Positions 1 through 59,900 of a stretch of DNA of 64,000 nt are shown piece after piece. A program made the position numbers and the translations under genes. The stretch covers positions 14,890,698-14,954,697 of the forward strand of contig OZ037765.1 in assembly GCA_964035545.1 (NCBI GenBank). The letters run 5' to 3'. This stretch comes from Bugula neritina. Taxonomy: Eukaryota; Animalia; Bryozoa. Positions within the stretch are counted from its first letter, which is position 1, and each line of letters starts with the position of its first letter. Under the pieces are notes generated by a model, which was not told the origin of the DNA, searched no databases, and saw nothing but the letters and a program-made list of their open reading frames with translations.

Positions 1-2055
1 CATACTGAAATATACTGTAACACACTGAAATATACTGCAAAATACTGAAATACACTGTAACACACTGAAATACACTGTAACACACTGAAATATACTGCAA
101 CACACTGCAATATACTGAAACACGCTGTAACATACTGAAATACACTGCAACATATTGAAATATACTGCAACACAATGAAACATACGGCAACATACTGAAA
201 CATAGTGCGACACATTGAAATATACTGCAACATACTGAAACATGCTGTAGCATACTGAAATACACTGCAACACATTGAAGTATACTGTAATATACAGAAA
301 TGTACTGTAACATACAGAAACATACGTCAACATACTGAAATGTACTGCAACATGCTGAACTATACTGCAACATACTGAAATACACTGTAATATACTGAAT
401 TAAACTGCAACATACTGCAACATACTGAAATAAGCTGTAGCATACTGAAATACATTGCAGCACACTGAAGCGTCCTGCAATATGCAGAAACGTACTGCAA
501 CATACTGAAATATACCGCAACAAACCGAAATTTTTGGTATACTGAAATATGTTGCAAACTAGTAAAATGTACTGCAACATACAGAAAATAACTGCAACTG
601 TGCAATATAATGAAATATACTGCAAAAATACTGAAATATACTGCAACAATTTGAAAGTTACTGTATGATACTGACATATACTGAAACACATTGAAACATA
701 CTGCAAGATACTGCAACATACTGAAATACACTATAACATACTGAAATACACTGCAACATACTGCAACATACTGCAACATACTGCAACATACTGAATTACA
801 CTGTAACATATTGAAGTACACTGCAATACATTGAAATTTACTGCACCACACTGAAACATACAGCAACATTCTGAAATACACTGTGACATACTGAAATACA
901 CTGCAACATACTGCAACATACTGCAACATACTGAAATACACTGTAACATATTGAAATACACTGCAACGCATTGAAATATACTGCAACACAATGAAACATA
1001 CGGCAACATACTGAAACATTGTGCGACACATTGAAATATACTGCAACATACTGAAACATGCTGTAGCGTACTGAAATACACTGCAACACATTGAAGTATA
1101 CTGTAATATACAGAAATGTACTGTAACATACTGAAACATACGTCAACATACTGAAATGTACTGCAACATGCTGAACTATACTGCAACATACTGAAATATA
1201 CTGCAACGTATCGAAGTATATTGTAATATACGGACATCTACTGTAACATACTGAAACATACTTAAACATACTGAAATATACTTCAACATACTGAAATATA
1301 CTGCAACATACTGCAACATACTGAAATACACTGTAACATACTGAAACACACTGCAACACATCGGAATGAACTGCAACATACCTAAATATACGGTAATATA
1401 CTGAAATATACTGTTCACATTGAAAAACACTGCAACATACTGAAATTTGCTGTAGCACAGTGAAATTCACTGCAACCCACTGAAATATAGTGTAATATAC
1501 GGAAATGTATTTTAACATACTGAAATATACTGTAACACACTGGAATATACTGTCACATACTGAAATACACTGTAAAATACTGAAACATATTGCAACATAG
1601 TGCAACATACTGAAATTCACTGTAGCATATTGAAATACGCTGCAACACATTGAAATATACTGCAACATACCGAAATATATGGTAAACTACTGAAATATAC
1701 TGTATCACATTGAAAAATACTGCAACATACTGAAATATGCTGTAACACACTGAAATATACTGCAAAATACTGAAATACACTGTAACATACTGAAATATAC
1801 TGCAACATACTGAAATACACTGTAACATACTGAAATATACTGCAACATACTGCAACATACTGAAATACACTGTAACGTACTGAAATACACAGCAACATAC
1901 TGCAACATACTGCAACATACTGAAATACGCTGTAACATATTGAATTACACTGCAACACATTGAAATATACTGCAACACACTGAAACATACGGCAACATAC
2001 TGAAATATACTGCAACACACTGAAACATACGGCAACATACTGAAATATACTGCAA
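1..2055 (+). repeat. 10-bp satellite array, segment 1 (continues beyond the window start)
   Basis: Continuous head-to-tail ACTG[C/T/A]AA[C/T]A[T/C] monomers. ACTG stays in register across the 10-nt columns apart from rare indels. Confidence 0.99.
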
Positions 2056-2232
2056 CACAGTTGGTTTAAGGTCATACTTTTCATTTTCTGGCTCTTTGCC
2101 AGGTGCTTTATGTTCTATATGAACAATGTTCCACTGATAGCTCGAACAGGTTGAATGTCACAGGAACAAAAAAAATATGAAAAGATAAAGAAACTCATGT
2201 TCTCCAATATACTTTTTTATTTTTTTCAAAAG
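2056..2232. repeat. Left TIR plus degenerate ~175-bp subterminal inverted repeat of family A (pairs with ~4428-4593)
   Basis: Collinear blocks shared with the reverse complement of the right end: the TIR, TGCTTTATGTT.TATAT.AAC, GATAGCTCGAACAG, GAAAAGATA and ATATACTTTTTTA.TTTTT. Confidence 0.9.
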
Positions 2233-3611
2233 CCAATTCATGTTTAAGTTATAGCTTGTTGAAAAACATAGTCCCCCTTCCACATTCTTTTCAATTTATA
2301 CGCTCCTGACTTGTTATTGTGTCTCAATAATATGCCTTGTATTTGAGTGCTTGTTAGTCTCGCTTCACTAACTTTGCCTATACTTCACAAGTGCCAGTGC
2401 TGCTGGCTCAAAAGCTAAATGTTATAAACTGTCAGCTAAAACCCAATCTTGTATTCCTAGGTTGGTTGGCCTAAATAAAACAATAGTCAAATCATGATTT
2501 CATGTTTTAAAAATTTACTCTATTCTAACCTGCTGCCTAGCTAGTTCTCTTTTTGATGTATAATTACAAAATTTGTGATACATTTTTTTGGCAACCATGT
2601 GATTTATAAAATGCAGTAATGGTACTTATAATATTATATTATTATCATTATAATATATTATATAGTATTATGTGTGTTTTTATTATACTTCATAATATCT
2701 ATTTTATTATTGTTGTTGCGCAAACAAGTGCAATTAACCTAGTTTTCAAAATGTACCTCTAAATTATCAGAATATCAGTTTAGATATTTTCATGCTTTGT
2801 TAGGTAAACCTAAAAAAAGAGGCTGTATTCCCAAAGTAAAGGGTGTTGAACTATGAACTATATTAGATTAGCCACTCTGCTACCAAGTGCATCAGTATAA
2901 TATTATATGAATAGCTCTGATGCTTTGTCTCCGGTGGCTGGCTGCGATATGATAACTTGGCCAACTTCCAAGAGTTTAAAATTGGCGCAATTATTCAAGA
3001 GGTTACATGCTGCACAGAGCTAGCAGTGATAGTAACCTTGCTATTGGCAGTACTTATTACAACTGCCAGCATATAAGCTGCATTGTAGAATGCCGTTGGG
3101 GTAGGCTAGTAAAACCAAATTCTGCTCTCTAATATACCTTAGACACAATGCAGCAACATAATTGTTCGTTTCAAATTACATTGCCACCCTTACATGAGCT
3201 GTGGGCTTCATAAAGATTCATATGATTAGAGATTTATGCTATAGGCTAGCTATGATGAAAATAACACACCATTGTCAAAGTTAACTTCAAGTATGTTGTT
3301 TTCCAGAAACTCAGTAATGTCCATTTATCTCTCGCATACAAATACTTATGTAATAGCATACAGTTTAAGTTTTATTTTAGAGCACATCTGCAAACTCTAC
3401 AATAAGAGCTTGCTTTACCAGTCTATTTCAGACCTGTTTTTGTAGCTAGTAATACGCAAGCTACTTATTTTTAAACTTTTGGGTTATTTGTTCAAAACCA
3501 TTTGCTTTGACTGCTATCAACATGAATTGACAGCCTAATAATTATAACCCATTTGCGCGCGAAATATTTATGTAATGATAGTGACTCAAATAGTGCACGG
3601 TTTAGAAGCAT

Positions 3612-3692
3612 GACTGCGTGGTCCAGAGGTTAGAGGCGTCAGCGAAGAGTTGGTTGGTCATGGTTCAACCCTGTTTTGTTGCAATTTTTTTT
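3612..3692 (+). ncRNA. tRNA-like RNA polymerase III unit (tRNA-derived or SINE-head-like, not a canonical tRNA) inside family A copy 1
   Basis: A-box-like TGGTCCAGAGG at 3619-3629, starting at +8 of GACTGCG as in tRNAs. B-box-like GGTTCAACCC at 3662-3671. Stem TCAGC/GTTGG with a 5-nt loop at the anticodon-arm position. T8 run at 3685-3692. The acceptor stem does not pair. Confidence 0.65.
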
Positions 3693-4282
3693 GTCAACTT
3701 ATGCAAATCCTACGCATGTATAATAAATATGGCTATAATTGTAAAGTTTTTTTTTAACTTTTGTTCAACAGTAAGACAACATACATGCATAATAATTAGA
3801 TACTGAACACTAGACTAAACCTTAAATTGATCTTATAGAATACAATGTACTTAAAATAATCATATGTGAATTAGAGAAACTGAAAGTATACACCTGCTGC
3901 GCTATAGACAGACCTTTACTGACAAGACTGCAAAGTGAAGTGATTTAGCTGAAATTAACTCTGCCAAACAAACAAAGAATTATGTTGTGCTGAGGCATTT
4001 TCAATATATTATTGTAACATAGTGAGATGATTCAGCTAAGTGCTAATGTAAAACAGGGAACATTATATTGGCAGAAATCCAATAGATTGCCAATTTGTGC
4101 GAGAGGGTACTATATGTTATTGTGATAGCGCAGAGCGGCAAACGTACTAGGAATGTTATAATTAGTCACAGGAGCGTAGCTAGAACCACCATATGAAGAA
4201 TTTAGAAAATTGCAGTGAAACTTGCAAAATGGTGTATGTTTTTACCAAATTGTGAAGAGCATAAACAGAATTTCAAAAAACA

Positions 4283-4531
4283 AAGAAAGTATATTAGAGA
4301 AAACATATCAAGGAATGTCAAGTTTAACTTTTAGACTTTATAAAATGAATCCCCTGTGCTACAGCAGTGGAACATGGAGGGTGTAAAATTTTACTTATTA
4401 TGCAACAACTTTCTCAGAAAATTTTTTATTGAAAAATTAAAAAAGTATATGAAAGAGGAATGCAAGAGCTATCTTTTCATGTAAAATTTGTTAATGTGAG
4501 ACAAAAACTGTTCGAGCTATCCCCTGGAAAC
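4283..4531 (+). repeat. Two degenerate direct subterminal repeats (~156-bp offset) at the right end of family A
   Basis: AAAGTATAT (4286) ... CAGTGGAACAT (4365) and AAAGTATAT (4442) ... CCCTGGAAAC (4522). A third, inverted copy lies at ~2126-2218. Confidence 0.75.
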
Positions 4532-6843
4532 CGTTTATATATAACATAAAGCAGTGCATGAATCTGGAAAGTAATGACCTTAAACTAACTGTGAAAACAT
4601 TGAAATATACTGCTACATACTGAAACATGCTGTAGCATACTGAAATACACTGCAACACACTGAAGTATACTGTAATATACAGAAATGTACTGTAACATAC
4701 TGAAACATACGTCAACATACTGAAATGTACTCCAACATGCTGAACTATACTGCAACATACTGAAATACACTGTAATGTACTGAATTAAACTGCAACACAT
4801 TGTAATATACTGCAACATACTGAATCATACAGCAACATACTGAAATATACTGCAACACATTTAAATATACTGCAACATATTGAAATATGCTGTAGCACCC
4901 TGAAATTCACTGCAACTTACTGAAATATAGTGTAATATACGGAATAGTACTGTAACATACTGAAACATACTGTAACACACTGAAATATGCTGTCACATAC
5001 TGAAATATACTGTAAATTACTAGAATTATACTGCAACATACTGCAACATACTGAAATACACTGTAACCTACTGATATACACTGCAATATACTACAACATA
5101 CTGAAATACACTGCAACATACTGCAACATACTGCAACATACTGAAATATTCTGTAACATATTGAAATACACTGCAACATACTGCAACATACTGCAACACA
5201 CTGAAACATACGGCAACACACTCACATGTACAGCGACACATTGAAATATACTGCAACATACTGAAATATGCTGTAGCATACTGAAATACACTGCAACACA
5301 CTGAAATATACTGCAACATACTGCAACATACTGAAATACACTGTAACATACTGAAATACACTGCAACATACTGCAACATACTGAAATACACTGGAACATA
5401 TTGAAACACACTACAACACATTGAAATATACTGCAACACACTGAAACATACAGCAACATACTGAAATATACTGCGACACATTGAAATATACTGCAACATA
5501 CTGAAATATGCTGTAGCATACTGTAATATACTGTAACACACTTTAATATACTGCAACATACTGCAACATACTGACATACACTGGAACATACTGAAATACA
5601 CTCCAATATACTACAACATACTGAAATACACTGTAACCTACTGAAATATGCTGTAGCACACCGAAATATACTGCAACATACTGAAATATAATGCAAGTTA
5701 CTACAACATACTGAAATACACTGTGACATACTGAGATACACTGCAACATACTGCAACATACTGCAACATACTGCAACATACTGATATACACTGTAACAGA
5801 CTGAAATGTACTGTAACACACTGAAATATACTGCAACATGCTGAAATACACTGTAACATACTGAAATATACTGCAACATACTGCAACATACCGAATTACA
5901 CTGTAACAAACTGAAATACACTCCAACATACTACAACATACTGAAATACACTGTAACGTATTGAAATACACCGCAACACATTGAAATATACTGCAACACA
6001 CTGAAATATACTGTAACACACTGTAATATACTGCAACATACTGCAACATACTGACATACACTGGAACATACTGAAATACACTCCAACATACTACAACATA
6101 CTGAAATACACTGTAACCTACTGAAATATGCTGTAGCACACTGAAATATACTGCAACATACTGAAATATAATGGAAGTTACTACAACATACTGAAATACA
6201 CTGTGACATACTGAGTTACACTGCAACACCTTGAAATATAGTGCAACACACTGAAAGATACAGCAACATACTGAAATATACTGCGACACATTGAAATATA
6301 CTGCAGCATACTGAAATATGCTGTAGCATACTGAAATATACTGTAACACACTGAAATATACTGCAACATACTGAAATACATTGTAACATACTGAAATATA
6401 CTGCAACATACTGAAATACACTGTAACATACTGAAATATACTGCAACATACTGCAACATACTGAAATACACTGTAACATACTGAAATACACTGCAACATA
6501 CTGCAACATACTGAAATACACTGGAACATATTGAAACACACTACAACACATTGAAATATACTGCAACACACTGAAACATACAGCAACATACTGAAATATA
6601 CTGCGACACATTGAAATATACTGCAACATAGCTAAATATAATGCAAGATACTGCAACATTCTGAAATACACTGTGACATACTGAAATACACTGCAACATA
6701 CTTCAACATACTCCAACATACTGCAACATACTGAAATACACTGTAACATATTGAAGTGCACTGCAACACATTGAAACATACTGCAACACACTGAAACATA
6801 CGGCAACATGCTGAACTATACTGCAACATACTGAAATACACTG

Positions 6844-37500: not shown

Positions 37501-38489
37501 CCAAAAAATATACTGCAACATACTGAATTACACTGCAATATCCTGAAATATACTTCAACATACTGAAACATACCTAAAAACATTGAAATATACTGAAATA
37601 CAGTGTAGGATATTGAAATACACTGCAACAATTTGGAATATACAGCAACATACCGAAATATATGGTAACCTACTGAAATATGTTGCAAACTACTGAAATA
37701 TACTGCAACATACTGCAACATAATGAAATATACTATAACACACTGGAATAAACTGCAAAATACTGAAATATACTGTAACATACTGAAACATACTGCAACA
37801 TACTGAAATATACTGTAACATACTGAAATATACTGCAAGAAACTGCAATATACTGAAATACACTGTAACATACTGAAATACACTGCAACATACTGCAACA
37901 TACTGACATACACTGGAACATACTGAAATACACTGCAACATACTACAACATACTGAAATACACTGTAACCTACTGAAATATGCTGTAGCACACTGAAATA
38001 TACTACAACATACTGAAATACACTGTGACATACTGAAATACACTGCAACATACTGCAACATACTGCAACATACTGAAATACACTGTAACATATTGAAATA
38101 CACTGCAAAACCTTGAAATATACTCCAACACACTGAAGTATACGGCAACATACTGAAATATACTGCGACACATTGAAATATACTGCAATATACTGAAATA
38201 TGCTGTAGCATACTGAAATATACTGTAACACACCGTAATACACTGCAACATACTGCAACATACTGACATACACTGGAACATACTGAAATACACTCCAACA
38301 TACTACAACATACTGAAATACACTGTAACCTACTGAAATATGCTGTAGCACACTGAAATATACTGCAACATACTGAAATATAATGAAAGTTACTACAACA
38401 TACTGAAATACACTGTGACATACTGATATACACTGCAACATACTGCAACATACTGCAACCTACTGCAATATACTGAAATACACTGTAAC

Positions 38490-39245
38490 CACAGGATAGT
38501 TAAGGGCATCCTCACTAAGAATATCATAAATTTCTCCCAAAATGTAGTTTAGGTTCTTGAATAATACTACTCTGCGGGTGGCATGCGTGTTGCCTACTTG
38601 CAATTGTTTAGCCTAAGATCAAACTACAACCAATAAGCAGCAACCTTCATTAGGGCTGCGTTATCTATCAACATTTCATTATAGGAGCTACATAAACAAA
38701 GTACCAAGCAAGCTATTCATTAAAGCCTGCCAGCTAGCAAGCCTGTAATTAGCATGTACGCGCCAATATCTTCTCATCCCTATGTGCTCATTGAAGCGTG
38801 AAGCACTGCGCGCTGCTAATTTACTATGAAAAAATATGGCATTTTCAGTGTATAAATCACCAATTTGTGGGTAATCTAGAAGAGTTATTGGAAAAAGAAA
38901 AAAACTTACTCTGGAGAAATACCTCAGGATTCCAGCAGTGCAATTTTTATTCAGATATCATGCTTTGCTGCTGAGATATTTTACTGGTACTGAAAATTCA
39001 GCTTTTCAGGCAAAATTGGCCAAAATTGGGCAGTTTTTTGTCTATAACTTTGCAAAAAAAATTGAAATTGAAATTTCCAAAAAACTTACCCTGGAGAAAA
39101 AGAAGATCTACAGCATAGTTTTTAAATTTTGACTCTAGCACAATTAGATGAGATTTTATTTTACTGGTACTGAATTCTTATATGATTACAATGCAAACCT
39201 CAGCAAGGCAGTTGCAGCTAAAAAGTTGCCCTTAACTATCCTGTG
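38490..39245. mobile_element. Non-autonomous TIR element (MITE-like), family B, 756 bp
   Basis: Perfect 19-bp TIR CACAGGATAGTTAAGGGCA ... TGCCCTTAACTATCCTGTG. The empty site at 34851-34870 reads cactgtaACagactgaaatg and the filled site reads cactgtaAC[element]ACagactg, giving a 2-bp TSD (AC). Higher-order unit arithmetic (+758 bp) agrees. Confidence 0.95.
38899..39174 (+). repeat. Bipartite direct repeat with exact 180-bp offset in family B
   Basis: AAAAAACTTAC[T/C]CTGGAGAAA at 38899 and 39079. TATTTTACTGGTACTGAA at 38977 and 39157. The intervening sequence is poorly conserved but identical in length. Confidence 0.9.
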
Positions 39246-42200
39246 ACAGACTGAAATGTACTGTAACACACTGACATATACTGCAACACATTGAAATATA
39301 CCGCAACATACTGAAATATGCTGTAGCACACTGAAATACACTGCAACTCACTATAATATAGTGTAATATACAGAAATGTACTGTAACATACTGAAATATA
39401 CTGTAACATACTGAAATCTACTGCAACATACTGAAGTACACTGCAACATACTGCAACATACGGAAATACACTGTAACATATTGAAATACACGACAACACA
39501 TTGAAATATACTGCAACAGACTGATGGATACGGCAACATACTGAAATATACTGCGACACATTGAAATATACTGCAACATACTGAAATATGCTGTAGCATA
39601 CTGAAATATACTGTAACACACTGTAAAATACTGCAACATACTGCAACATACTGCCTTACACTGGAACATACTGAAATACACTGCAACATACTACAACATA
39701 CTGAAATACACTGTACCCTACTGAAATATGCTGTAGCACACTGAAATATACTGCAACATACTGAAATATAATGCAAGTTACTACAACATACTGAAATACA
39801 CTGTGACATACTGGGATACACTGCAACATACTGCAACATACTGCAACATCTTGAAATACACTGTAACCTGCTGAAATACACTGTAGCATATTGAAATACG
39901 CTGCAACACATTGAAATATACTGCAACATATCGAAATATATGGTAAACTACTGAAATATACTGTATCACATTGAAAAATGCTGCAACATACTGAAATATG
40001 CTGTAACACACTGAAATATACTGCAAAATACTGAAATACACTGTAACATACTGAAATATACTGCAACATACTGAAATACACTGTAACATACTGAAATATA
40101 CTGCAACATACTGCAACATACTGAAATACACTGTAACGTACTGAAATACACAGCAACATACTGCAACATACTGCAACATACTGAAATACGCTGTAACATA
40201 TTGAATTACACTGCAACACATTGAAATATACTGCAACACACTGAAACATACGGCAACATACTGAAATATACTGCAACACACTGAAACATACGGCAACATA
40301 CTGAAATATACTGCAAAACATTGAAATATACTGCTACATACTGAAACATGCTGTAGCATACTGAAATACACTGCAACACACTGAAGTAAACTGTAATATA
40401 CAGAAATGTACTGTAACATACTGAAACATACGTCAACATACTGAAATGTACTCCAACATGCTGAACTATACTGCAACATACTGAAATACACTGTAATAAT
40501 ATTATACTGAATTAAACTGCAACACATTGTAATATACTGCAACATACTGAATCATACAGCAACATACTGAAATATACTGCAACACATTTAAATATACTGC
40601 AACATATTGAAATATGCTGTAGTACCCTGAAATTCACTGCAACTTACTGAAATATAGTGTAATATACGGAATAGTACTGTAACATACTGAAATATACTGT
40701 AACACACTGAAATATGCTGTCACATACTGAAATATCCTGTAAATTACTAGAATTATACTGCAACATACTGCAACATACTGAAATACACTGTAACCTACTG
40801 ATATACACTGCAATATACTACAACATACTGAAATACACTGCAACATACTGCAACATACTGCAACATACTGAAATACACTGTAACATATTGAAATACACTG
40901 CAACATACTGCAACATACTGCAACATACTGCAACATACTGCAACACACTGAAACATACGGCAACACACTCACATGTACAGCGACACATTGAAATATACTG
41001 CAACATGCTGAAATATGCTGTAGCATACTGAATACACTGCAACACACTGAAATATACTGCAACATACTGCAACATACTGAAATACACTGTAACATACTGA
41101 AATACACTGCAACATACTGAAATACACTGGAACATATTGAAACACACTACAACACATTGAAATATACTGCAACACACTGAAACATACAGCAACATACTGA
41201 AATATACTGCGACACATTGAAATATACTGCAACATACTGAAATATGCTGTAGCATACTGTAATATACTGTAACACACTTTAATATACTGCAACATACTGC
41301 AACATACTGACATACACTGGAACATACTGAAATACACTCCAATATACTACAACATACTGAAATACACTGTAACCTACTGAAATATGCTGTAGCACACCGA
41401 AATATACTGCAACATACTGAAATATAATGCAAGTTACTACAACATACTGAAATACACTGTGACATACTGAGATACACTGCAACATACTGCAACATACTGC
41501 AACATACTGCAACATACTGATATACACTGTAACAGACTGAAATGTACTGTAACACACTGAAATATACTGCAACATGCTGAAATACACTGTAACATACTGA
41601 AATATACTGCAACATACTGCAACATACCGAATTACACTGTAACAAACTGAAATACACTCCAACATACTACAACATACTGAAATACACTGTAACGTATTGA
41701 AATACACCGCAACACATTGAAATATACTGCAACACACTGAAATATACTGCAACATACTGCAACATAATGAAATATACTATAACACACTGGAATAAACTGC
41801 AAAATACTGAAATATACTGTAACATACTGAAACATACTGCAACATACCGAAATATACTGTAACATTCTAAAATATACTGCAAGATACTGCAATATACTGA
41901 AATACACTGTAACATACTGAAATACACTGCAACATACTGCAACATACTGACATACACTGGAACATACTGAAATACACTGCAACATACTACAACATACTGA
42001 AATACACTGTAACCTACTGAAATATGCTGTAGCACACTGAAATATACTGCAACATACTGAAATATAATGCAAGTTACTACAACATACTGAAATACACTGT
42101 GACATACTGAAATACACTGCAACATACTGCAACATACTGCAACATACTGAAATACACTGTAACATATTGAAATACACTGCAAAACCTTGAAATATACTCC

Positions 42201-45200
42201 AACACACTGAAGTATACGGCAACATACCGAAATATACTGCGACACATTGAAATATACTGCAACATACTGAAATATGCTGTAGCATACTGAAATATACTGT
42301 AACACACTGTAATATACTGCAACATACTGCAACATACTGACATACACTGGAACATACTGAAATACACTCCAACATACTACAACATACTGAAATACACTGT
42401 AACCTACTGAAATATGCTGTAGCACACTGAAATATACTGCAACATACTGAAATACAATGAAAGTTACTACAACATACTGAAATACACTGTGACATACTGA
42501 TATACACTGCAACATACTGCAACATACTGCAACCTACTGCAACATACTGAAATACACTGTAACAGACTGAAATGTACTGTAACACACTGACATATACTGC
42601 AACACATTGAAATATACCGCAACATACTGAAATATGCTGTAGCACACTGAAATACACTGCAACTCACTATAATATAGTGTAATATACAGAAATGTACTGT
42701 AACATACTGAAATATACTGTAACATACTGAAATCTACTGCAACATACTGAAGTACACTGCAACATACTGCAACATACGGAAATACACTGTAACATATTGA
42801 AATACACGACAACACATTGAAATATACTGCAACAGACTGAAGGATACGGCAACATACTGAAATATACTGCGACACATTGAAATATACTGCAACATACTGA
42901 ATTATGCTGTAGCATACTGAAATATACTGTAACACACTGTAAAATACTGCAACATACTGCAACATACTGACATACACTGGAACATACTGAAATACACTGC
43001 AACATACTACAACATACTGAAATACACTGTACCCTACTGAAATATGCTGTAGCACACTGAAATATACTGCAACATACTGAAATATAATGCAAGTTACTAC
43101 AACATACTGAAATACACTGTGACATACTCGGATACACTGCAACATACGGCAACATACTGCAACATACTGAAATACACTGTAACCTGCTGAAATACACTGC
43201 AACACACTACAACATACTGAAATACACTGTAACATTATGAATTACACTGCAACACATTGAAAAATACTGCAACATATCGAAATATATGGTAAACAACTGA
43301 AATATACCGTAACACATCGCAAAATACTGCAACATACTGAAATATACTGTAACACACTGAAATATACTGCAACATACTGAAATACATTGTAACATACTGA
43401 AATATACTGCAACATACTGCAACATACTGAAATACATTGTAACATACTGAAATACACTGCAACATACTGCAACATACTGAAATACACTGTAACATATTGA
43501 AGTGCACTGCAACACATTGAAACATACTGCAACACACTGAAACATACGGCAATATACTGAAATATACTGCAGCACATTGAAATATACTGCAACATAGTCA
43601 AATAGAATGCAAGATACTGTAACATTCTGAAACACACTGTGAGATACTGAAAAACACTGTGACATACTTAAATACACTGCAACATACTGCAACATACTGA
43701 AATACACTGCAACACATTGAAATAAACCGCAACATACTTAAATATACGGTAACATACTGAAATATACTGTAACTCATTGAAAAACATTGCAACATACTGA
43801 AACATACCGAAATATGCTGTAGCACACTGAAATACACCGCAGTTCACTGAAAAATAGTGTAATATACGGAAATGTACCGTAACATACTGAAATATACTGT
43901 AACAGACTGAAATGTACTTTAACACACTGAAATATACTGCAACATGCTGAAATACACTGTAACATACTGAAATATACTGCAACATACTGCAACATACCGA
44001 ATTACACTGTAACAAACTGAAATACACTCCAACATACTACAACATACTGAAATACACTGTAACATATTGAAATACACCGCAACACATTGAAATATACTGC
44101 AACATACCGAAATATATGGTAAACTACTGAAATATACGGTAACACATTGAAACATACCGCAAAATACTAAAATACACTGCAACACACTGAAGTATACTGT
44201 AATATATATAGAAATGTACTGTAAAATACTTAAACATACGACAACATACCAAAAAATATACTGCAACATACTGAATTACACTGCAATATCCTGAAATATA
44301 CTTCAACATACTGAAACATACCTAAAAACATTGAAATATACTGAAATACAGTGTAGGATATTGAAATACACTGCAACAATTTGGAATATACAGCAACATA
44401 CCGAAATATATGGTAACCTACTGAAATATGTTGCAAACTACTGAAATATACTGCAACATACTGCAACATAATGAAATATACTATAACACACTGGAATAAA
44501 CTGCAAAATACTGAAATATACTGTAACATACTGAAACATACTGCAACATACCGAAATATACTGTAACGTACTGAAATATACTGCAAGAAACTGCAATATA
44601 CTGAAATACACTGTAACATACTGAAATACACTGCAACATACTGCAACATACTGACATACACTGGAACATACTGAAATACACTGCAACATACTACAACATA
44701 CTGAAATACACTGTAACCTACTGAAATATGCTGTAGCACACTGAAATATACTGCAACATACTGAAATATAATGCAAGTTACTACAACATACTGAAATACA
44801 CTGTGACATACTGAAATACACTGCAACATACTGCAACATACTGCAACATACTGAAATACACTGTAACATATTGAAACACACTGCAAAACCTTGAAATATA
44901 CTCCAACACACTGAAGTATACGGCAACATACTGGAATATACTGCGACACATTGAAATACACTGCAACATACTGAAATATGCTGTAGCATACTGAAATATA
45001 CTGTAACACACTGTAATATACTGCAACATACTGCAACATACTGACATACACTGGAACATACTGAAATACACTCCAACATACTACAACATACTGAAATACA
45101 CTGTAACAGACTGAAATGTACTGTAACACACTGACATATACTGCAACACATTGAAATATACCGCAACATACTGAAATATGCTGTAGCACACTGAAATACA

Positions 45201-48200
45201 CTGCAACTCACTATAATATAGTGTAATATACAGACATGTACTGTGACATACTGAAATATACTGTAACATACTGAAATCTACTGCAACATACTGAAGTACA
45301 CTGCAACATACTGCAACATACGGAAATACACTGTAACATATTGAAATACACGACAACACATTGAAATATACTGCAACAGACTGAAGGATACGGCAACATA
45401 CTGAAATATACTGCGACACATTGAAATATACTGCAACATACTGAAATATGCTGTAGCATACTGAAATATACTGTAACACACTGTAAAATACTGCAACATC
45501 TGCAACATACTGACATACACTGGAACATACTGAAATACACTGCAACATACTACAACATACTGAAAAACACTGTACCCTACTGAAATATGCTGTAGCACAC
45601 TGAAATATACTGCAACATACTGAAATATAATGCAAGTTACTACAACATACTGAAATACACTGTGACATACTGAGATACACTGCAACATACTGCAACATAC
45701 TGCAACATACTGAAATACACTGTAACCTGCTGAAATACACTGCAACATACTACAACATACTGAAATACACTGTAACATTATGAATTACACTGCAACACAT
45801 TGAAAAATACTGCAACATATCGAAATATATGGCAAACAACTGAAATATACTGTAACACATCGAAAAATACTGCAACATACTGAAATATACTGTAACACAC
45901 TGAAAGATACTGCAACATACTGAAATACATTGTAACATACTGAAATATACTGCAACATACTGCAACATACTGAAATACACTGTAACATACTGAAATACAC
46001 TGCAACATACTGCAACATACTGAATTACACTGTAACATATTGAAGTCCACTGCAACACATTGAAACATACTGCAACACACTGAAACATACGGCAACATAC
46101 TGAAATATACTGCAACACATTGAAATATACTGCAACATAGTCAAATATAATGCAAGATACTGTAACATTCTGAAACACACTGTGAGATACTGAAAAACAC
46201 TGTGACATACTTAAATACACTGCAACATACTGCAACATACTGAAATACACTGCAACACATTGAAATAAACCGCAACATACTTAAATATACGGTAACATAC
46301 TGAACTATACTGTAACTCATTGAAAAACATTGCAACATACTGAAACATACTGAAATATGCTGTAGCACACTGAAATACACCGCAGTTCACTGAAAAATAG
46401 TGTAATATACGGAAATGTACCGTAACATACTGAAATATACTGTAACAGACTGAAATGTACTGTAACACACTGAAATATACTGCAACATGCTGAAATACAC
46501 TGTAACATATTGAAATATACTGCAACATACTGCAACATACCGAATTACACTGTAACAAACTGAAATACACTCCAACATACTGCAACATACCGAAATACAC
46601 TGTAACATACTGAAATACACTGCAACATACTGCAACAAACTGAAATACATTGGAACATATTGAAACACACTACAACACATTAAAATATACTGCAACACAC
46701 TGAAACATACGGCAACATACTGAAATATACTGCAAAACATCTAAATATACTGCTACATACTGAAACATGCTGTAGCATACTGAAATACACTGCAACACAC
46801 TGAAGTATACTGTAATATACAGAAATGTACTGTAACATACTGAAACGTGCGTCAACATACTGAAATGTACTCCAACATGCTGAACTATACTGCAACATAC
46901 TGAAATACACTGTAATATACTGAATTAAACTGCAACATACTGCAACATACTGAAATAAGCTGTACCATATTGAAATACACTACAACACATTGTAATATAC
47001 TGCAACATACTGAACCATACGGCAACATACTGAAATATACTGCAACACATTGAAATATACTGCAACATAGTCAAATATAACGCAAGATACTGTAACATTC
47101 GGAAAAACACTGTGACATACTGAAATACACTGCAACATACTGCAACATACTGCAACATACTGAAATACACTGCAACACATTGAAATAAACCGCAACATAC
47201 TTAAATATACGGTAACATACTGAAATATACTGTAACTCATTGAAAAACATTGCAACATACTGAAACATACTGAAATATGCTGTAGCACACTGAAATACAC
47301 CGCAGTTCACTGAAAAATAGTGTAATATACGGAAATATACCGTAACATACTGAAATATACTGTAACAGACTGAAATGTACTGTAACACACTGAAATATAC
47401 TGCAACATGCTGAAATACACTGTAACGTACTGAAATATACTGCAACATACTGCAACATACCGAATTACACTGTAACAAACTGAAATACACTCCAACAAAC
47501 TACAACATACTGAAATACACTGTAACATATTGAAATACACCGCAACACATTGAAATATACTGCAACATACCGAAATATATGGTAAACTACTGAAATATAC
47601 TGTAACACATGGAAACATACCGCAAAATACTAAAATACACTGCAACACACTGAAGTATACTGTAATATATAGAAATGTACTGTAAAATACTTAAACATAT
47701 GACAACATACCAAAAAATATACTGTAACATACTGAATTACACTGCAATATCCTGAAATATACTTCAACATACTGAAACATACCTAAAAACCTTGAAATAT
47801 ACTGAAATACAGTGTAGGATATTGAAATACACTGCAACAATTTGGAATATACAGCAACATACCGAAATATATGGTAACCTACTGAAATATGTTGCAAACT
47901 ACTGAAATATACTGCAACATACTGCAACATAATGAAATATACTATAACACACTGGAATAAACTGCAAAATACTGAAATATACTGTAACATACTGAAACAT
48001 ACTGCAACATACCGAAATATACTGTAACATTCTGAAATATACTGCAAGATACTGCAATATACTGAAATACACTGTAACATACTGAAATACACTGCAACAT
48101 ACTGCAACATACTGACATACACTGGAACATACTGAAATACACTGCAACATACTACAACATACTGAAATACACTGTAACCTACTGAAATATGCTGTAGCAC

Positions 48201-51200
48201 ACTGAAATATACTGCAACATACTGAAATATAATGCAAGTTACTACAACATACTGAAATACACTGTGACATACTGAAATACACTGCAACATACTGCAACAA
48301 ACTGAAATACATTGGAACATATTGAAACACACTACAACACATTAAAATATACTGCAACACACTGAAACATACGGCAACATACTGAAATATACTGCAAAAC
48401 ATCTAAATATACTGCTACATACTGAAACATGCTGTAGCATACTGAAATACACTGCAACACACTGAAGTATACTGTAATATACAGAAATGTACTGTAACAT
48501 ACTGAAACGTACGTCAACATACTGAAATGTACTCCAACATGCTGAACTATACTGCAACATACTGAAATACACTGTAATATACTGAATTAAACTGCAACAT
48601 ACTGCAACATACTGACATACACTGGAACATACTGAAATACACTCCAATATACTACAACATACTGAAATACACTGTAACCTACTGAAATATGCTGTAGCAC
48701 ACCGAAATATACTGCAACATACTGAAATATAATGCAAGTTACTACAACATACTGAAATACACTGTGACATACTGAGATACACTGCAACATACTGCAACAT
48801 ACTGCAACATACCGAATTACACTGTAACAAACTGAAATACACTCCAACATACTACAACATACTGAAATACACTGTAACATATTGAAATACATCGCAACAC
48901 ATTGAAATATACTGCAACACACTGAAATATACTGTAACACACTGTAATATACTGCAACATACTGCAACATACTGACATACACTGGAACATACTAAAATAC
49001 ATGCCAACATACTACAACATACTGAAATACACTGTAACCTACTGAAATATGCTGTAGCACACTGAAATATACTGCAACATACTGAAATATAATGCAAATT
49101 ACTACAACATACTGAAATACACTGTGACATACTGAGTTACACTGCAACACCTTGAAATATAGTGCAACACACTGAAAGATACGGCAACATACTGAAATAT
49201 ACTGCGACACATTGAAATATACTGCAGCATACTGAAATATGCTGTAGCATACTGAAATATACTGTAACACACTGAAATATACTGCAACATACTGAAATAC
49301 ATTCTAACATACTGAAATATACTGCAACATACTGAAATACACTGTAACATACTGAAATATACTGCAACATACTGCAACATACTGAAATACACTGTAACAT
49401 ACTGAAATACACTGGAACATACTGCAACATACTGAAATACACTGGAACATATTGAAACACACTACAACACATTGAAATATACTGCAACACACTGAAACAT
49501 ACAGCAACATACTGAAATATACTGCGACACATTGAAATATACTGCAACATAGCTAAATATAATGCAAGATACCTCAACATTCTGAAATACACTGTGACAT
49601 ACTGAAATACACTGCAACATACTGCAACATACTGCAACATACTGAAATACACTGCAACACATTGAAATAAACCGCAACATACTTAAATATACGGTAACAT
49701 ACTGAAATATACTGTAACTCATTGAAAAACATTGCAACATACTGAAACATACTGAAATATGCTGTAGCACACTGAAATACACCGCAGTTCACTGAAAAAT
49801 AGTGTAATATACGGAAATATACCGTAACATACTGAAATATACTGTAACAGACTGAAATGTACTGTAACACACTGAAATATACTGCAACATGCTGAAATAC
49901 ACTGTAACATACTGAAATATACTGCAACATACTGCAACATACCGAATTACACTGTAACAAACTGAAATACACTCCAACAAACTACAACATACTGAAATAC
50001 ACTGTAACATATTGAAATACACCGCAACACATTGAAATATACTGCAACATACCGAAATATATGGTAAACTACTGAAATATACTGTAACACATGGAAACAT
50101 ACCGCAAAATACTAAAATACACTGCAACACACTGAAGTATACTGTAATATATAGAAATGTACTGTAAAATACCTAAACATATGACAACATACCAAAAAAT
50201 ATACTGTAACATACTGAATTACACTGCAATATCCTGAAATATACTTCAACATACTGAAACATACCTAAAAACTTTGAAATATACTGAAATACAGTGTAGG
50301 ATATTGAAATACACTGCAACAATTTGGAATATACAGCAACATACCGAAATATATGGTAACCTACTGAAATATGTTGCAAACTACTGAAATATACTGCAAC
50401 ATACTGCAACATAATGAAATATACTATAACACACTGGAATAAACTGCAAAATACTGAAATATACTGTAACATACTGAAACATACTGCAACATACCGAAAT
50501 ATACTATAACATTCTGAAATATACTGCAAGATACTGCAATATACTGAAATACACTGTAACATACTGAAATACACTGCAACATACTGCAACATACTGACAT
50601 TCACTGGAACATACTGAAATACACTGCAACATACTACAACATACTGAAATACACTGTAACCTACTGAAATATGCTGTAGCACACTGAAATATACTGCAAC
50701 ATACTGAAATATAATGCAAGTTACTACAACATACTGAAATACACTGTGACATACTGAAATATACTGCAACATACTGCAACATACTGAAATACACTGTAAC
50801 ATATTGAAATACACTGCAACATACTGCAACAAACTGAAATACATTGGAACATATTGAAACACACTACAACACATTAAAATATACTGCAACACACTGAAAC
50901 ATACGGCAACATACTGAAATATACTGCAAAACATCTAAATATACTGCTACATACTGAAACATGCTGTAGCATACTGAAATACACTGCAACACACTGAAGT
51001 ATACTGTAATATACAGAAATGTACTGTAACATACTGAAACGTACGTCAACATACTGAAATGTACTCCAACATGCTGAACTATACTGCAACATACTGAAAT
51101 ACACTGTCATATACTGAATTAAACTGCAACATACTGCAACATACTGAAATAAGCTGTACCATATTGAAATACACTACAACACATTGTAATATACTGCAAC

Positions 51201-51390
51201 ATACTGAACCATACGGCAACATACTGAAATATACTGCAACACATTGAAATATACTGCAACATAGTCAAATATAACGCAAGATACTGTAACATTCGGAAAA
51301 ACACTGTGACATACTGAAATACACTGCAACATACTGCAACATACTGCAACATACTGAAATACACTGCAACACATTGAAATAAACCGCAAC
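39246..51390 (+). repeat. 10-bp satellite array, segment 3
   Basis: Same monomer family and orientation. Confidence 0.99.
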
Positions 51391-53931
51391 CACAGTTGGT
51401 TTAAGGTCATTACTTTCCAGATTCAGGCACTGCTTTATGTTATATATAAACGGTTTCCAGGGGATAGCTCGAACAGTTTTTGTCTCACATTAACAAATTT
51501 TACAAGAAAAGATAGCTCTTGCATTCCTCTTTCATATACTTTTTTAGTTTTTCAATAAAAAATTTTCTGAGAAAGTTGTTGCATAATAAGTAAAATTTTA
51601 CACCCTCCATGTTCCACTGCTGTAGCACAGGGGATTCATTTTATAAAGTCTAAAAGTTAAACTTGACATTCCTTGATATGTTTTCTCTAATATACTTTCT
51701 TTGTTTTTTGAAATTCTGTTTATGCTCTTCACAATTTGGTAAAAACATACACCATTTTGCAAGTTTCACTGCAATTTTCTAAATTCTTCATATGGTGGTT
51801 CTAGCTACGCTCCTGTGACTAATTATAACATTCCTAGTACGTTTGCCGCTCTGCGCTATCACAATAACATATAGTACCCTCTCGCACAAATTGGCAATCT
51901 ATTGGATTTCTGCCAATATAATGTTCCCTGTTTTACATTAGCACTTAGCTGAATCATCTTACTATGTTACAATAATATATTGAAAATGCCTCAGCACAAC
52001 ATAATTCTTTGTTTGTTTGGCAGAGTTAATTTCAGCTAAATCACTTCACTTTGCAGTCTTGTCAGTAAAGGTGTACTTTCAGTTTCTCTAATTCACATAT
52101 GATTATTTTAAGTACATTGTATTCTATAAGATCAATTTAAGGTTTAGTCCAGTGTTCAGTATCTAATTATTATGCATGTATGTTGTCTTACTGTTGAACA
52201 AAAGTTCAAAAAAAAACTTTACAATTATAGCCATATTTATTATACATGCGTAGGATTTGCATAAGTTGACAAAACAAATTGCATCAAAACAGGGTTGAAC
52301 CATGACCAACCAACTCGACGCTGACGCCTCTAACTTCTGGACCACGCAGTCATCGTTAATAAGACCTGCACTGTATGAGTAACTATCATTACATAAATAT
52401 TTCTCGCGCAAATGGGTTATAATTATTAGGCTGTCAATTCATGTTGATAGCAGTCAACTGTTGCAATAGTCTCGGGTTACTAGCAAAGCTAATGGTTTTG
52501 AACAAATAACCCAAAAGTTTAAAAATAAGTAGCTTGCGTATTACTAGCTACAAAAACAGGTCTGAAATAGACTGGTAAAGCAAGCTCTTATTGTAGAGTT
52601 TGCAGATGTGCTCTAAAATAAAACTTAAACTGTATGCTATTACATAAGTATTTGTATGCGAGAGATAAATGGACATTACTGAAGTTCTGGAAAACAACAT
52701 ACTTGAAGTTAACTTTGACAATGGTGTGTTATTTTCATCATAGCTAGCCTATAGCATAAATCTCTAATCATATGAATCTTTATGAAGCCCACAGCTCATG
52801 TAAGGGTGGCAATGTAATTTGAAACGAACAATTATGTTGCTGCATTGTGTCTAAGGTATATTAGAGAGCAGAATTTGGTTTTACTAGCCTACCCCAACGG
52901 CATTCTAGAATGCAGCTTATATGCTGGCAGTTGTAATAAGTACTGCCAATAGCAAGGTTACTATCACTTCTAGCTCTGTGCAGTATGTAACCTCTTGAAT
53001 AATTGCGCCAATTTTAAACTCTTGGAAGTTGGCCAAGTTATCATATCGCAGCCAGCCACCGGAGACAAAGCATCAGAGCTATTCATATAATATTATACTG
53101 ATGCACTTGGTAGCAGAGTGGCTAATCTAATATAGTTCATAGTTCAACACCCTTTACTTTGGGAATACAGCCTCTTTTTTTAGGTTTACCTTACAAAGCA
53201 TGAAAATATCTAAACTGATATTCTGATAATTTAGAGGTACATTTTGAAAACTAGGTTAATTGCACTTGTTTGCACAACAATAATAAAATTGATATTATGC
53301 AGTATAATAAAAACACACATAATACTATATAATATATTATAATGATAATAATATAATATTATAAGTACCATTACTGCATTTTATAAATCACATGGTTGCC
53401 AAAAAAATGTATCACAAATTTTGTAATTATACATCAAAAATAGAACTAGCTAGGCAGCAGGTTAGAATAGAGTAAATTTTTAAAACATGAAATCATGATT
53501 TGACTATTGTTTTATTTAGGCCAACCAACCTAGGAATACAAGATTGGGTTTTAGCTGACAGTTTATAACATTTAGCTTTTGAGCCAGCAGCACTGGCACT
53601 TGTGAAGTATAGGCAAAGTTAGTGAAGCGAGACTAACAAGCACTCAAATACAAGGCATATTGAGACGCAATAACAAGTCAGGAGCGTATAAATTGAAAAG
53701 AATGTGGAAGGGGGACTATGTTTTTCAACAAGCTATAACTTAAACATGAATTGGCTTTTGAAAAAAATAAAAAAGTATATTGGAGAACATAAGTTTTTTT
53801 ATCTTTTCATATTTTTTTTGTTCCTGTGACATTCAACCTGTTTGAGCTATCAGTGGAACATTGTTCATATAGAACATAAAGCACCTGGCAAAGAGCCAGA
53901 AAATGAAAAGTATGACCTTAAACCAACTGTG
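51391..53931 (-). mobile_element. Family A copy 2 (2541 bp), inverted relative to copy 1
   Basis: Reverse complement of 2056-4593 with a perfect 20-bp TIR CACAGTTGGTTTAAGGTCAT. The empty site near 47189 reads aaccgcaACatactta and the filled site reads aaccgcaAC[element]ACatactta, giving TSD AC. The paralog offset changes from 4194 to 6737 (2541+2). Confidence 0.95.
52271..52351 (-). ncRNA. tRNA-like Pol III unit in family A copy 2
   Basis: Minus strand: A-box-like TGGTCCAGAAG (52334-52344), B-box-like GGTTCAACCC (52292-52301), the same TCAGC/GTTGG stem with loop GTCGA, and downstream TTTGTTTT. Confidence 0.6.
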
Positions 53932-56900
53932 ACATACTTAAATATACGGTAACATACTGAAATATACTGTAACTCATTGAAAAACATTGCAACATACTGA
54001 AACATACTGAAATATGCTGTAGCACACTGAAATACACCGCAGTTCACTGAAAAATAGTGTAATATACGGAAATATACCGTAACATACTGAAATATACTGT
54101 AACAGACTGAAATGTACTGTAACACACTGAAATATACTGCAACATGCTGAAATACACTGTAACATACTGAAATATACTGCAACATACTGCAACATACCGA
54201 ATTACACTGTAACAAACTGGAATACACTCCAACAAACTACAACATACTGAAATACACTGTAACATATTGAAATACACTGCAACACATTGAAATATACTGC
54301 AACATACCGAAATATATGGTAAACTACTGAAATATACTGTAACACATGGAAACATACCGCAAAATACTAAAATACACTGCAACACACTGAAGTATACTGT
54401 AATATATAGAAATGTACTGTAAAATACTTAAACATATGACAACATACCAAAAGATATACTGTAACATACTGAATTACACTGCAATATCCTGAAATATACT
54501 TCAACATACTGAAACATACCTAAAAACCTTGAAATATACTGAAATACAGTGTAGGATATTGAAATACACTGCAACAATTTGGAATATACAGCAACATACC
54601 AAAATATATGGTAACCTACTGAAATATGTTGCAAACTCCTGAAATATACTGCAACATACTGCAACATAATGAAATATACTATAACACACTGGAATAAACT
54701 GCAAAATACTGAAATATACTGTAACATACTGAAACATACTGCAACATACCGAAATATACTGTAACATTCTGAAATATACTGCAAGATACTGCAATATACT
54801 GAAATACACTGTAACATACTGAAATACACTGCAACATACTGCAACATACTGACATACACTGGAACATACTGAAATACACTGCAACATACTACAACATACC
54901 GAAATACACTGTAACCTACTGAAATATGCTGTAGCACACTGAAATATACTGCAACATACTGAAATATAATGCAAGTTACTACAACATACTGAAATACACT
55001 GTGACATACTGAAATACACTGCAACATACTGCAACATACTGCAACATACTGAAATACACTGTAACATATTGAAATACACTGCAACATACTGCAACATACT
55101 GCAACACACTGAAACATACGGCAACACACTCACATGTACAGCGACACATTGAAATATACTGCAACATACTGAAATATGCTGTAGCATACTGAAATACACT
55201 GCAACACACTGGAATATACTGCAACATACTGCAACATACCGAAATACACTGTAACATACTGAAATACACTGCAACATACTGCAACATACTGAAATACACT
55301 GGAACATATTGAAACACACTACAACACATTGAAATATACTGCAACACACTGAAACATACAGCAACATACTGAAATATACTGTGACACATTGAAATATACT
55401 GCAACATACTGAAATATGCTGTAGCATACTGTAATATACTGTAACACACTGTAATATACTGCAACATACTGCAACATACTGACATACACTGGAACATACT
55501 GAAATACACTCCAATATACTACAACATACTGAAATACACTGTAACCTACTGAAATATGCTGTAGCACACCGAAATATACTGCAACATACTGAAATATAAT
55601 GCAAGTTACTACAACATACTGAAATACACTGTGACATACTGAGATACACTGCAACATACTGCAACATACTGCAACATACCGAATTACACTGTAACAAACT
55701 GAAATACACTCCAACATACTACAACATACTGAAATACACTGTAACATATTGAAATACATCGCAACACATTGAAATATACTGCAACACACTGAAATATACT
55801 GTAACACACTGTAATATACTGCAACATACTGCAACATACTGACATACACTGGAACATACTAAAATACATGCCAACATACTACAACATACTGAAATACACT
55901 GTAACCTACTGAAATATGCTGTAGCACACTGAAATATACTGCAACATACTGAAATATAATGCAAATTACTACAACATACTGAAATACACTGTGACATACT
56001 GAGTTACACTGCAACACCTTGAAATATAGTGCAACACACTGAAAGATACGGCAACATACTGAAATATACTGCGACACATTGAAATATACTGCAGCATACT
56101 GAAATATGCTGTAGCATACTGAAATATACTGTAACACACTGAAATATACTGCAACATACTGAAATACATTCTAACATACTGAAATATACTGCAACATACT
56201 GAAATACACTGTAACATACTGAAATATACTGCAACATACTGCAACATACTGAAATACACTGTAACATACTGAAATACACTGGAACATACTGCAACATACT
56301 GAAATACACTGGAACATATTGAAACACACTACAACACATTGAAATATACTGCAACACACTGAAACATACAGCAACATACTGAAATATACTGCGACACATT
56401 GAAATATACTGCAACATAGCTAAATATAATGCAAGATACCTCAACATTCTGAAATACACTGTGACATACTGAAATACACTGCAACATACTTCAACATACT
56501 GCAACATACTGCAACATACTGAAATACACTGTAACATAATGAAGTGCACTGCAACACATTGAAACATACTGCAACAAACTGAAACATACGACAACATACT
56601 GAAATATACTGCAACACATTGAAATATACTGCAACATAGTCAAATATAATGCAAGATACTGTAACATTCTGAAACACACTGTGAGATACTGAAATACACT
56701 GCAACATACTGCAACATACTGCAACATACTGCAACATACTGAAATACACTGTAACATATTGAAGTACACTGCAACACATTGAAATATACTGCAACACACT
56801 GAAACATACTGCAACATACTGAAATATACTGCAACATATCGAAGTATATCGTAATATACGGACATGCACTGTAACATACTGAAACATACTGAAACATACT

Positions 56901-59900
56901 GAAACATACTGAAATATACTGGAACATACCGAAATATACTTCAACATACTAAAATATACTGCAACATACTGAAACATACTGAAATACACTGTAACATACT
57001 GAAATACACTGCAACACATCGGAATAAATTGTAACATACCTAAATATACGGAAATATACTGAAATATACTGCTCACATTGAAAAACACTGCAACATACTG
57101 AAATTTGCTGTAGCACAATGAAATTCACTGCAACCCACTGAAATATAGTGTAATATACGGAAATGTACTTTAACATACTGAAATATACTGCAACACATTG
57201 ACATATACTGCAACACACTGAAACATACGGCAACATATTGAAATATACTGCAACACATTGAAACATACTGCAACACACTGAAACATACGGCAACATACTG
57301 AAATATACTGCAACATACTGCAACGTACTGAAATACACTGTAACGTACTGAAATACACAGCAACATACTGCAACATACTGCAACATACTGAAATAAGCTG
57401 TAACATATTGAATTACACTGCAACACATTGAAATATACTGCAACACACTAAAACATACGGCAACATACTGAAATATACTGCAACACACTGAAACATACGG
57501 CAACATACTGAAATATACTGCAAAACATTGAAATATACTGCTACATACTGAAACATGCTGTAGCATACTGAAATACACTGCAACACACTGAAGTATACTG
57601 TAATATACAGAAATGTACTGTAACATACTGAAACATACGTCAACATACTGAAATGTACTCCAACATGCTGAACTATACTGCAACATACTGAAATACACTG
57701 TAATATACTGAATTAAACTGCAACACATTGTAATATACTGCAACATACTGAATCATACGGCAACATACTGAAATATACTGCAACACATTGAAATATACTT
57801 CAACATATTGAAATATGCTGTAGCGCCCTGAAATTCACTGCAACTTACTGAAATATAGTGTAATATACGGAATTGTACTGTAACCTACTGAAATATACTG
57901 TAACACACTGAAATATGCAGTCACATACTGAAATATACTGTAAATTATTAGAATTATACTGCAACATACTGCAACATACTGAAATACACTGTAACCTACT
58001 GATATACACTGCAATATACTACAACATACTGAAATACACTGTAACATATTGAAATACGCTGCAACACATTGAAATATACTGCAACATACCGAAATATATG
58101 GTAAACTGCTGAAATATACCGTAACACATCAAAAAATACTGCAACATACTGAAATATACTGTAACACACTGAAATATACTGCAACTTACTGAAATACATT
58201 GTAACATACTGAAATATACTGCAACATACTGCAACATACTGAAATACACTGTAACATACTGATATACACTGCTATATACTACAACATACTGAAATACACT
58301 GTAACATATTGAAATACGCTGCAAAACATTGAAATATACTGCAACATACCGAAATATATAGTAAACTACTGAAATATACTGTAACACATCGAAAAATACT
58401 GCAACATACTGAAATATACTGTAACACACTGAAATATACTGCAACATACTGAAATACATTGTAACATACTGCAACATTCTGAAATACACTGTGACATATT
58501 GAAATACACTGCAACATACTGCAACATACTGCAACATACTACAACATACTGAAATACACTGTAACATATTGAAGTGCACTGCAACACATTGAAATATACT
58601 GCAACACACTGAAACATACAGCAACATACTGAAGTATACTGCAACACATTGAAAAATACTGCAACATACCGAAATATATGGTAAACTACTGAAATATACT
58701 GTAACACATTGAAAAAAATGCAACATACTGAAATATACTGTAACACACTGAAATATACTGCAAAATACTGAAATACACTGTAACATACTGAAATACACTG
58801 TAACACACTGAAATATACTGCAACACACTGCAATATACTGAAACACGCTGTAACATACTGAAATACACTGCAACATACTACAACATATTGAAATACACTG
58901 CAACACATTGAAATATACTGCAACACAATGAAACATACGGCAACATACTGAAACATAGTGCGACACATTGAAATATACTGCAACATAAAGAAACATGCTG
59001 TAGCATACTGAAATACACTGCAACACATTGAAGTATACTGTAATATACAGAAATGTACTGTAACATACAGAAACATACGTCAACATACTGAAATGTACTG
59101 CAACATGCTGAACTATACTGCAACATACTGAAATACACTGTAATATACTGAATTAAACTGCAACATACTGCAACATACTGAAATAAGCTGTAGCATACTG
59201 AAATACCTTGCAGCACACTGAAGCGTCCTGCAATATGCAGAAACGTACTGCAACATACTGAAATATACCGCAACAAACCGAAATTTATGGTATACTGAAA
59301 TATGTTGCAAACTAGTAAAATGTACTGCAACATACCGAAAATAACTGCAACTGTGCAATATAATGAAATATATTGCAAAAATACTGAAATATACTGCAAC
59401 AATTTGAAAGTTACTGTATGATACTGACATATACTGAAACACATTGAAACATACTGCAAGATACTGCAACATACTGAAATACACTATAACATACTGAAAT
59501 ACACTGCAACATACTGCAACATACTGCAACATACTGCAACATACTGAAATACACTGTAACATATTGAAGTACACTGCAATACATTGAAATTTACTGCACC
59601 ACACTGAAACATACAGCAACATACTGAAATACACTGTGACATACTGAAATACACTGCAACATACTGCAACATACTGCAACATACTGCAACATACTGAAAT
59701 ACACTGTAACATATTGAAATACACTGCAACGCATTGAAATATACTGCAACACAATGAAACATACGGCAACATACTGAAACATAGTGCGATTCATTGAAAT
59801 ATACTGCAACATACTGAAACATGCTGTAGCATACTGAAATACACTGCAACACATTGAAGTATACTGTAATATACAGAAATGTACTGTAACATACTGAAAC

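Follow-up and report, generated by a model that had tools for sequence, protein, structure and literature searches.

CACAG-N5-TTAAGG-N-CA, a two-box end signal shared by CAC-ended transposon families of Bugula neritina

Three insertions in a satellite array

The window, i.e., the whole stretch of 64,000 nucleotides analyzed in this study, covers positions 14,890,698-14,954,697 of OZ037765.1 (C1:14890698-14954697) in the 216-Mb Bugula neritina assembly GCA_964035545.1. It consists of a single satellite array with three clean interruptions, which are referred to as A1, B, and A2, and its features are as follows.

1-2055, 4594-38489, 39246-51390, and 53932-64000, no strand: satellite of period 10/20 bp whose repeat unit approximates CTGAAATATACTGCAACATA (Tandem Repeats Finder)
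2056-4593, forward strand: A1, family A, a non-coding, non-autonomous TIR transposon of 2538 bp (ends, alignment, and ORF list)
2056-2075, forward strand: left TIR of A1, CACAG-TTGGT-TTAAGG-TCAT, with the inner box TTAAGG-T-CA (motif match)
4574-4593, reverse strand: right TIR of A1, with the same boxes as the left TIR and the spacer TTAGT (motif match)
2054-2055 and 4594-4595, no strand: 2-bp TSD of A1, AA (flank comparison)
38490-39245, forward strand: B, a non-coding, non-autonomous element of 756 bp with a perfect 19-bp TIR, CACAG-GATAG-TTAAGG-GCA (ends and ORF list)
38488-38489 and 39246-39247, no strand: 2-bp TSD of B, AC (flank comparison)
51391-53931, reverse strand: A2, family A, 2541 bp, with the spacer TTGGT in both TIRs (ends and alignment)
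51389-51390 and 53932-53933, no strand: 2-bp TSD of A2, AC (flank comparison)

The satellite has a period of 20 and is present in approximately 3000 copies in the window according to Tandem Repeats Finder, and its composition is uniform except at the inserts. A2 is the reverse complement of A1 with 96.4% identity. The interior of A1 contains no ORF longer than 62 aa in the ORF list, and the ORF lists of A and B yield no credible ORF in either element. An earlier note on this DNA described the interiors of the two families as dissimilar, and blastn agrees, finding nothing above chance besides the TIRs (best E 0.18). The end sequences given there for the two families are also correct, but one end of A1, in which a one-base change gives the spacer TTAGT, went unmentioned.

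A1 (L001) recurs 20.9 kb upstream at C1:14871833-14874370 (L002), accompanied to its left and right by no less than 1.5 kb of satellite; the flanks of the two copies are 99.9-100% identical and both carry the AA duplication, which indicates that the satellite array was duplicated in blocks of approximately 21 kb after the insertion. Two copies of B located 3.3 kb apart (L056 and L059) represent a smaller-scale version of the same post-insertion duplication. Approximately 8 kb past the end of the window (C1:14962344-14967480), a full copy of A lies in reversed orientation inside another copy of A, at position 326-328 of the latter, and the two halves of the interrupted copy share 3 nt when aligned, which points to self-nesting with a short duplication.

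Genome-wide element boundaries and target sites

At least 40 full-length copies of family A (97-100% identity) and at least 40 of family B (94-100%) were scored, and every alignment stops at CACAG/CTGTG. The 60 copies extracted with 1.5-kb flanks, and all copies in the window, start with CACAG and end with CTGTG. Three pairs in the set of 60 are duplicated loci, which leaves 57 independent insertions; in 53 of these, CACAG is directly adjoined on its outer side by a perfect 2-bp TSD, and a TTAA flanking duplication was found in none of the 57. Together with the AA, AC, and AC duplications in the window, these counts confirm the proposal of the earlier note that the outer ends are the functional ones. 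TA is the most common TSD dinucleotide (23 of 53, 43%, versus a background of 10%; p = 4e-10), and the other 57% of the TSDs are AA, TT, TG, CA, CC, and six more dinucleotides.

The genome contains an estimated 200 copies of A, 250 copies of B (500 matches to the 19-mer), and 40 elements of a third family, the ends of which are described below. Insertions occur in satellite, unique DNA, a LINE, and a Gypsy-like element, and the elements therefore have no satellite specificity. The three families form a young and abundant CAC-ended lineage in this genome.

Two insertions interrupt coding sequences of other elements, as judged by eye from the translations: a copy of A lies within a LINE-like reverse-transcriptase ORF (L029; 1-1500 and 4049-5519), and a copy of B splits a Gypsy-like protease/reverse-transcriptase ORF (L045; 63-1514 and 2219-3085). 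A-type ends of a "G variant" were considered as the ends of long elements spanning these two loci, an assignment that was rejected because the flanks are LINE reverse transcriptase and Gypsy-like pol, respectively; to judge by a pair of 2,589 bp on contig 2, the G variant is a subfamily of family A. The extra TIR matches in L040 and L042 belong to ordinary copies of A and B and were discarded as candidates for anything new.

Two further loci depart from the simple pattern. One copy of A (L019; C3:19514931-19517471) is flanked by the 5-bp repeat GCCAT instead of a 2-bp TSD and is the only such copy among the 57, which may reflect a rare alternative stagger or chance; a five-base stagger is typical of Transib and RAG. 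The same B insertion and its flanks are found at C7:12216967 and C7:14896382 (L053 and L054), 2.7 Mb apart and inverted, with flanks that are 98.9-99.9% identical and adjoining dinucleotides that do not match (AT and TA). This pair represents either a large inverted duplication or a copy of B nested in another repeat.

Logan contigs of four public runs were aligned to a 100%-identical copy of A (L003) over the stretch 1260-4460, which lies between tandem repeats at 816-1253 and 4464-4576. In each of the four runs, three from samples of one and the same organism and one labeled "symbiont metagenome," the summed contig depth over family A is very high. The coverage begins at the first base of the element, which fits the CACAG boundary. 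Neither a junction that bridges the element nor one that links TTAA to TTAA occurs in the contigs; since only the probable source sample contains the flanks of this insertion, the contigs are uninformative on excision.

The end motif, its long carriers, and a proposed mechanism

The motif CACAGNNNNNTTAAGG is matched by 6/6 element ends in the window and has 0 matches in 100 shuffles (0 expected). In the whole genome it occurs 1134 times (567 + 567), versus 37 (17 + 20) for a reversed control. The CACAG-N5-TTAAGG ends are real and highly non-random, and the observation of the earlier note that both families share CACAG, TTAA at positions 11-14, and the following GG holds well beyond the window. 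When consensus ends were built from 30 copies of each of the two families, giving four end types, positions 1-5, 11-16, and 18-19 were identical across all four, i.e., CACAG-N5-TTAAGG-N-CA. Base 17, in the inner box, is T in A (TTAAGG-T-CA) and G in B (TTAAGG-G-CA).

A third TIR type, which surfaced in a search for spacers starting with A or C, combines CACAG-CATAG-TTAAGG and CACAG-CTTGA-TTAAGG as the two opposite ends of a single element. All of its ends (76/76) read CATAG or CTTGA followed by TTAAGGTCA, and its inner box (TTAAGG-TCA) is that of family A. The presence of unrelated spacers in one element beside invariant boxes indicates that the length of the spacer is constrained and its sequence is not; these asymmetric spacers are the clearest evidence in this analysis for a free spacer sequence. 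The end signal is thus CACAG, a free 5-nt spacer, and TTAAGG-N-CA.

Recent common descent of the TIRs of the three families, with boxes that are shared in the absence of functional constraint and spacers that differ by chance, would also produce similar ends. In favor of this reading, there are few independent comparisons with three or four TIR types, and GATAG and CATAG differ by one base. The distribution of the differences makes this reading improbable: five of the six mismatches between A and B in the first 20 nt form one contiguous run, so that the spacer differs at 5/5 positions while 14/15 positions outside it are identical (shuffle P = 0.006). In addition, the third-family elements keep identical boxes in every one of their ends with unrelated spacers on the two sides, and the interiors of the elements are unrelated.

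The earlier note had favored a composite, in which a Kolobok-like element of the form TTAA/GG...CC/TTAA gained 10-bp CACAG caps and could be moved by two transposases. The TTAA and GG at positions 11-16 of every end do formally resemble the TTAA TSD and the RR/YY termini of Kolobok (PMC9587614). However, empty cap palindromes (CACAG-N5-TTAA-N5-CTGTG) occur 0 times in 216 Mb. A search for uncapped A cores (TTAAGGTCAT plus six subterminal positions, with non-C at position -10) gave 5 matches, 2 of which are point-mutated caps, leaving at most 3, compared with 2 in the control and 369 capped ends. For B, 16 matches were obtained beside 451 capped ends: 11 are point-mutated caps, 4 retain the GATAG spacer, and one is unrelated. 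Uncapped cores are therefore at the background level, most of the apparent cases being point-mutated or partly truncated caps, and with the missing palindromes this means that a TTAA-bounded unit has never been seen mobile and that the cap never occurs without the core. No insertion has a TTAA TSD. Moreover, the motif lies at the same offset in three internally unrelated TIR types, including elements of 11-16 kb, and a composite would need three identical nestings, or an autonomous element that is itself the "core." Judged by the tests that the earlier note itself proposed, the composite is refuted, and we assign it a negligible probability.

Of the 16 B matches, 11 carry T or A in place of the first C of a damaged cap (TACAG, AACAG, and AGCAG), and these copies are presumably immobile.

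Long units, which were located by pattern match only as inverted pairs of full TIRs, have these ends as well. The B-type 19-mer, in inverted pairs, delimits units of 11,027 bp (C1:13964138-13975164), 10,959 bp (C2:24996230-25007188), and 12,798 bp (C3:1146574-1159371). At its right end, the 11,027-bp unit agrees with the right end of B at 27/27 nt; at its left end, it follows B for 19 nt and then diverges from both B end types within positions 20-27. Inverted pairs of the third type delimit about 38 elements, mostly of 5.3-5.5 kb (e.g., C2:18505349-18510711), with six or more of 12-16 kb; the long ones include elements of 12,442 bp (C6:7085149-7097590), 13,262 bp, 13,475 bp, 14,006 bp, and 15,897 bp (C4:15502832-15518728). 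Long elements with CACAGN5TTAAGG ends, which the earlier note had suggested looking for, thus exist as units of 11 to 15.9 kb with the full motif at both ends. On contig 1 and the first part of contig 2, no long element has the A spacer (TTRGT), and the variants there are 3.3-5.7 kb; the 12.4-kb family is the simplest candidate for the helper of A on the basis of the shared inner box. Genome scans with the Pfam profiles RAG1 (PF12940) and Transposase_21 (PF02992), which have little power on the short exons of a distant multi-exon gene, gave no candidates.

On this evidence, A and B are probably non-autonomous members of a single lineage, most likely CMC, which has CAC ends and 2-bp TSDs and in which the TIR is a single two-box unit and a putative transposase acts in trans. 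The whole TIR of 19-20 nt would serve as one recognition unit with two constrained boxes. CACAG would be the cleavage and strand-transfer end, joined to the target with a 2-nt stagger, and TTAAGG-N-CA (positions 11-19) would most likely be the seat at which the DNA-binding part of the transposase sits, while the five spacer bases between them would not be read by the enzyme. The roles of the two boxes are assigned by analogy with the domain logic of ProtoRAG: experiments on its TIRs showed that cleavage requires the terminal CAC and that recombination is efficient and precise only with a second conserved block on the far side of a spacer (PMC8289069). The TTAA in the inner box would be incidental and no relic of a TTAA target. 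The transposase for A and B would be supplied by long elements with the same ends, and the pairing of enzyme and family proposed here follows the end sequences: the 11-kb family (CACAG-GATAG-TTAAGG-GCA) matches B, and the family of 12.4-15.9 kb (CACAG-CATAG or CTTGA-TTAAGG-TCA) has its inner box in common with A, so that family A would most simply be moved by the 12.4-kb family.

A bolder extension, which we put forward tentatively and consider rather doubtful, is that the two boxes form a compact code, comparable to heptamer and nonamer, that is recognized by an unnamed branch of the CMC/Transib clan with a RAG1 fold. Base 17 (T/G) would then be a specificity switch that directs A and the 5.4-kb family to the transposase of the 12.4-kb element and B to that of the 11-kb element, and the spacer would drift freely, including between the left and right ends of a single element.

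These results replace the idea of a composite moved by two transposases with an end signal that is simply defined and can be tested, and CACAG-N5-TTAAGG-N-CA lends itself to the clean annotation of these elements and of their helpers. On their own, the ends are ordinary for CAC-type transposons; the point of interest is the inner box, especially base 17, as a possible determinant of helper specificity. If the partner enzyme has a RAG1-like fold, the signal would be a minimal natural substrate for the two-part reading of ends at a short, fixed spacing.

Comparison with known transposons and recombination signals

Judged from its ends, the lineage most likely fits the CACTA/Mirage/Chapaev (CMC) group, which is listed as EnSpm in Repbase. 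The termini 5'-CAC...GTG-3' of this group are present in all 60 extracted copies and all copies in the window. CAC/GTG termini with a 2-bp TSD have been reported for CACTA/CMC elements, including ENS1_Cis of the tunicate Ciona savignyi (PMC6004678), and the perfect 2-bp TSDs in 53/57 insertions lie within the range of 2-4 bp over which CMC TSDs extend (preprint 10.64898/2026.08.26.747230). Animal CACTA elements and CMC MITEs share with the present families the CAC...GTG termini, a short TIR, and a loose 2-bp TSD (PMC6004678). Like CMC, these families comprise many short non-autonomous derivatives that would be moved in trans. The terminus is CACTA in CMC, whereas it is CACAG here, and TTAAGG-N-CA at a fixed distance of 5 nt is, as far as checked outside Repbase/Dfam, particular to the families of this genome.

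Assignment to another superfamily with a 2-bp TSD, either ISL2EU (related to PIF/Harbinger) or Tc1/mariner-pogo, would make the CAC terminus coincidental, and this seems quite unlikely. ISL2EU has a 2-bp TSD and an IS5/Harbinger-like transposase, and the TSDs here match it in length. Repbase treats it as a superfamily of its own (PMC4455052). The position of TA as the most common TSD (23/53) is likewise compatible with these superfamilies, but the 57% of non-TA TSDs conflict with the TA-only specificity of Tc1/mariner and pogo, nothing specifically favors ISL2EU, and CAC...GTG with a 2-bp TSD has been reported as characteristic of animal CACTA/CMC elements (PMC6004678).

The resemblance to Kolobok is limited to the letters TTAA and two purines. 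Kolobok has a TTAA-specific 4-bp TSD that abuts the RR/YY termini (PMC9587614), whereas here TTAA lies 10 nt inside the element and is never duplicated; the real termini are CA...TG, and no mobile unit is bounded by TTAA. The TTAA TSD of piggyBac is likewise not found, the TSDs being 2 bp.

The earlier note had offered, as a fallback, an undescribed TIR lineage with a bipartite signature. A two-box lineage in or near CMC/EnSpm agrees with our results; that it is undescribed is not established by the ends, since a two-box TIR with CAC ends and 2-bp TSDs falls within the range of CMC and RAG-like elements (PMC6004678, PMC8289069). The ends of A and B are an ordinary two-part signal of CAC-type cut-and-paste transposons. 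The heptamer-spacer-nonamer of the RSS and the TR1-spacer-TR5 of ProtoRAG have the same arrangement of a CAC-initiated box and a second box at a fixed spacing, and in both of them cleavage is determined by CAC (PMC8289069). The RSS heptamer is CACAGTG, compared with CACAG here (CACAGTT in family A), and the ends of the present elements thus have the CAC heptamer-like terminus of Transib and RAG-like elements. To our knowledge, these elements have no RAG2-like partner. The spacer of 12/23 or 27/31 in the RAG family and Transib contrasts with 5 nt here, and the 5-bp TSD of Transib and RAG-like elements contrasts with the 2-bp TSD here, a 5-bp repeat (GCCAT) flanking a single copy of the 57. The ends of the Bugula neritina elements are symmetric in length.
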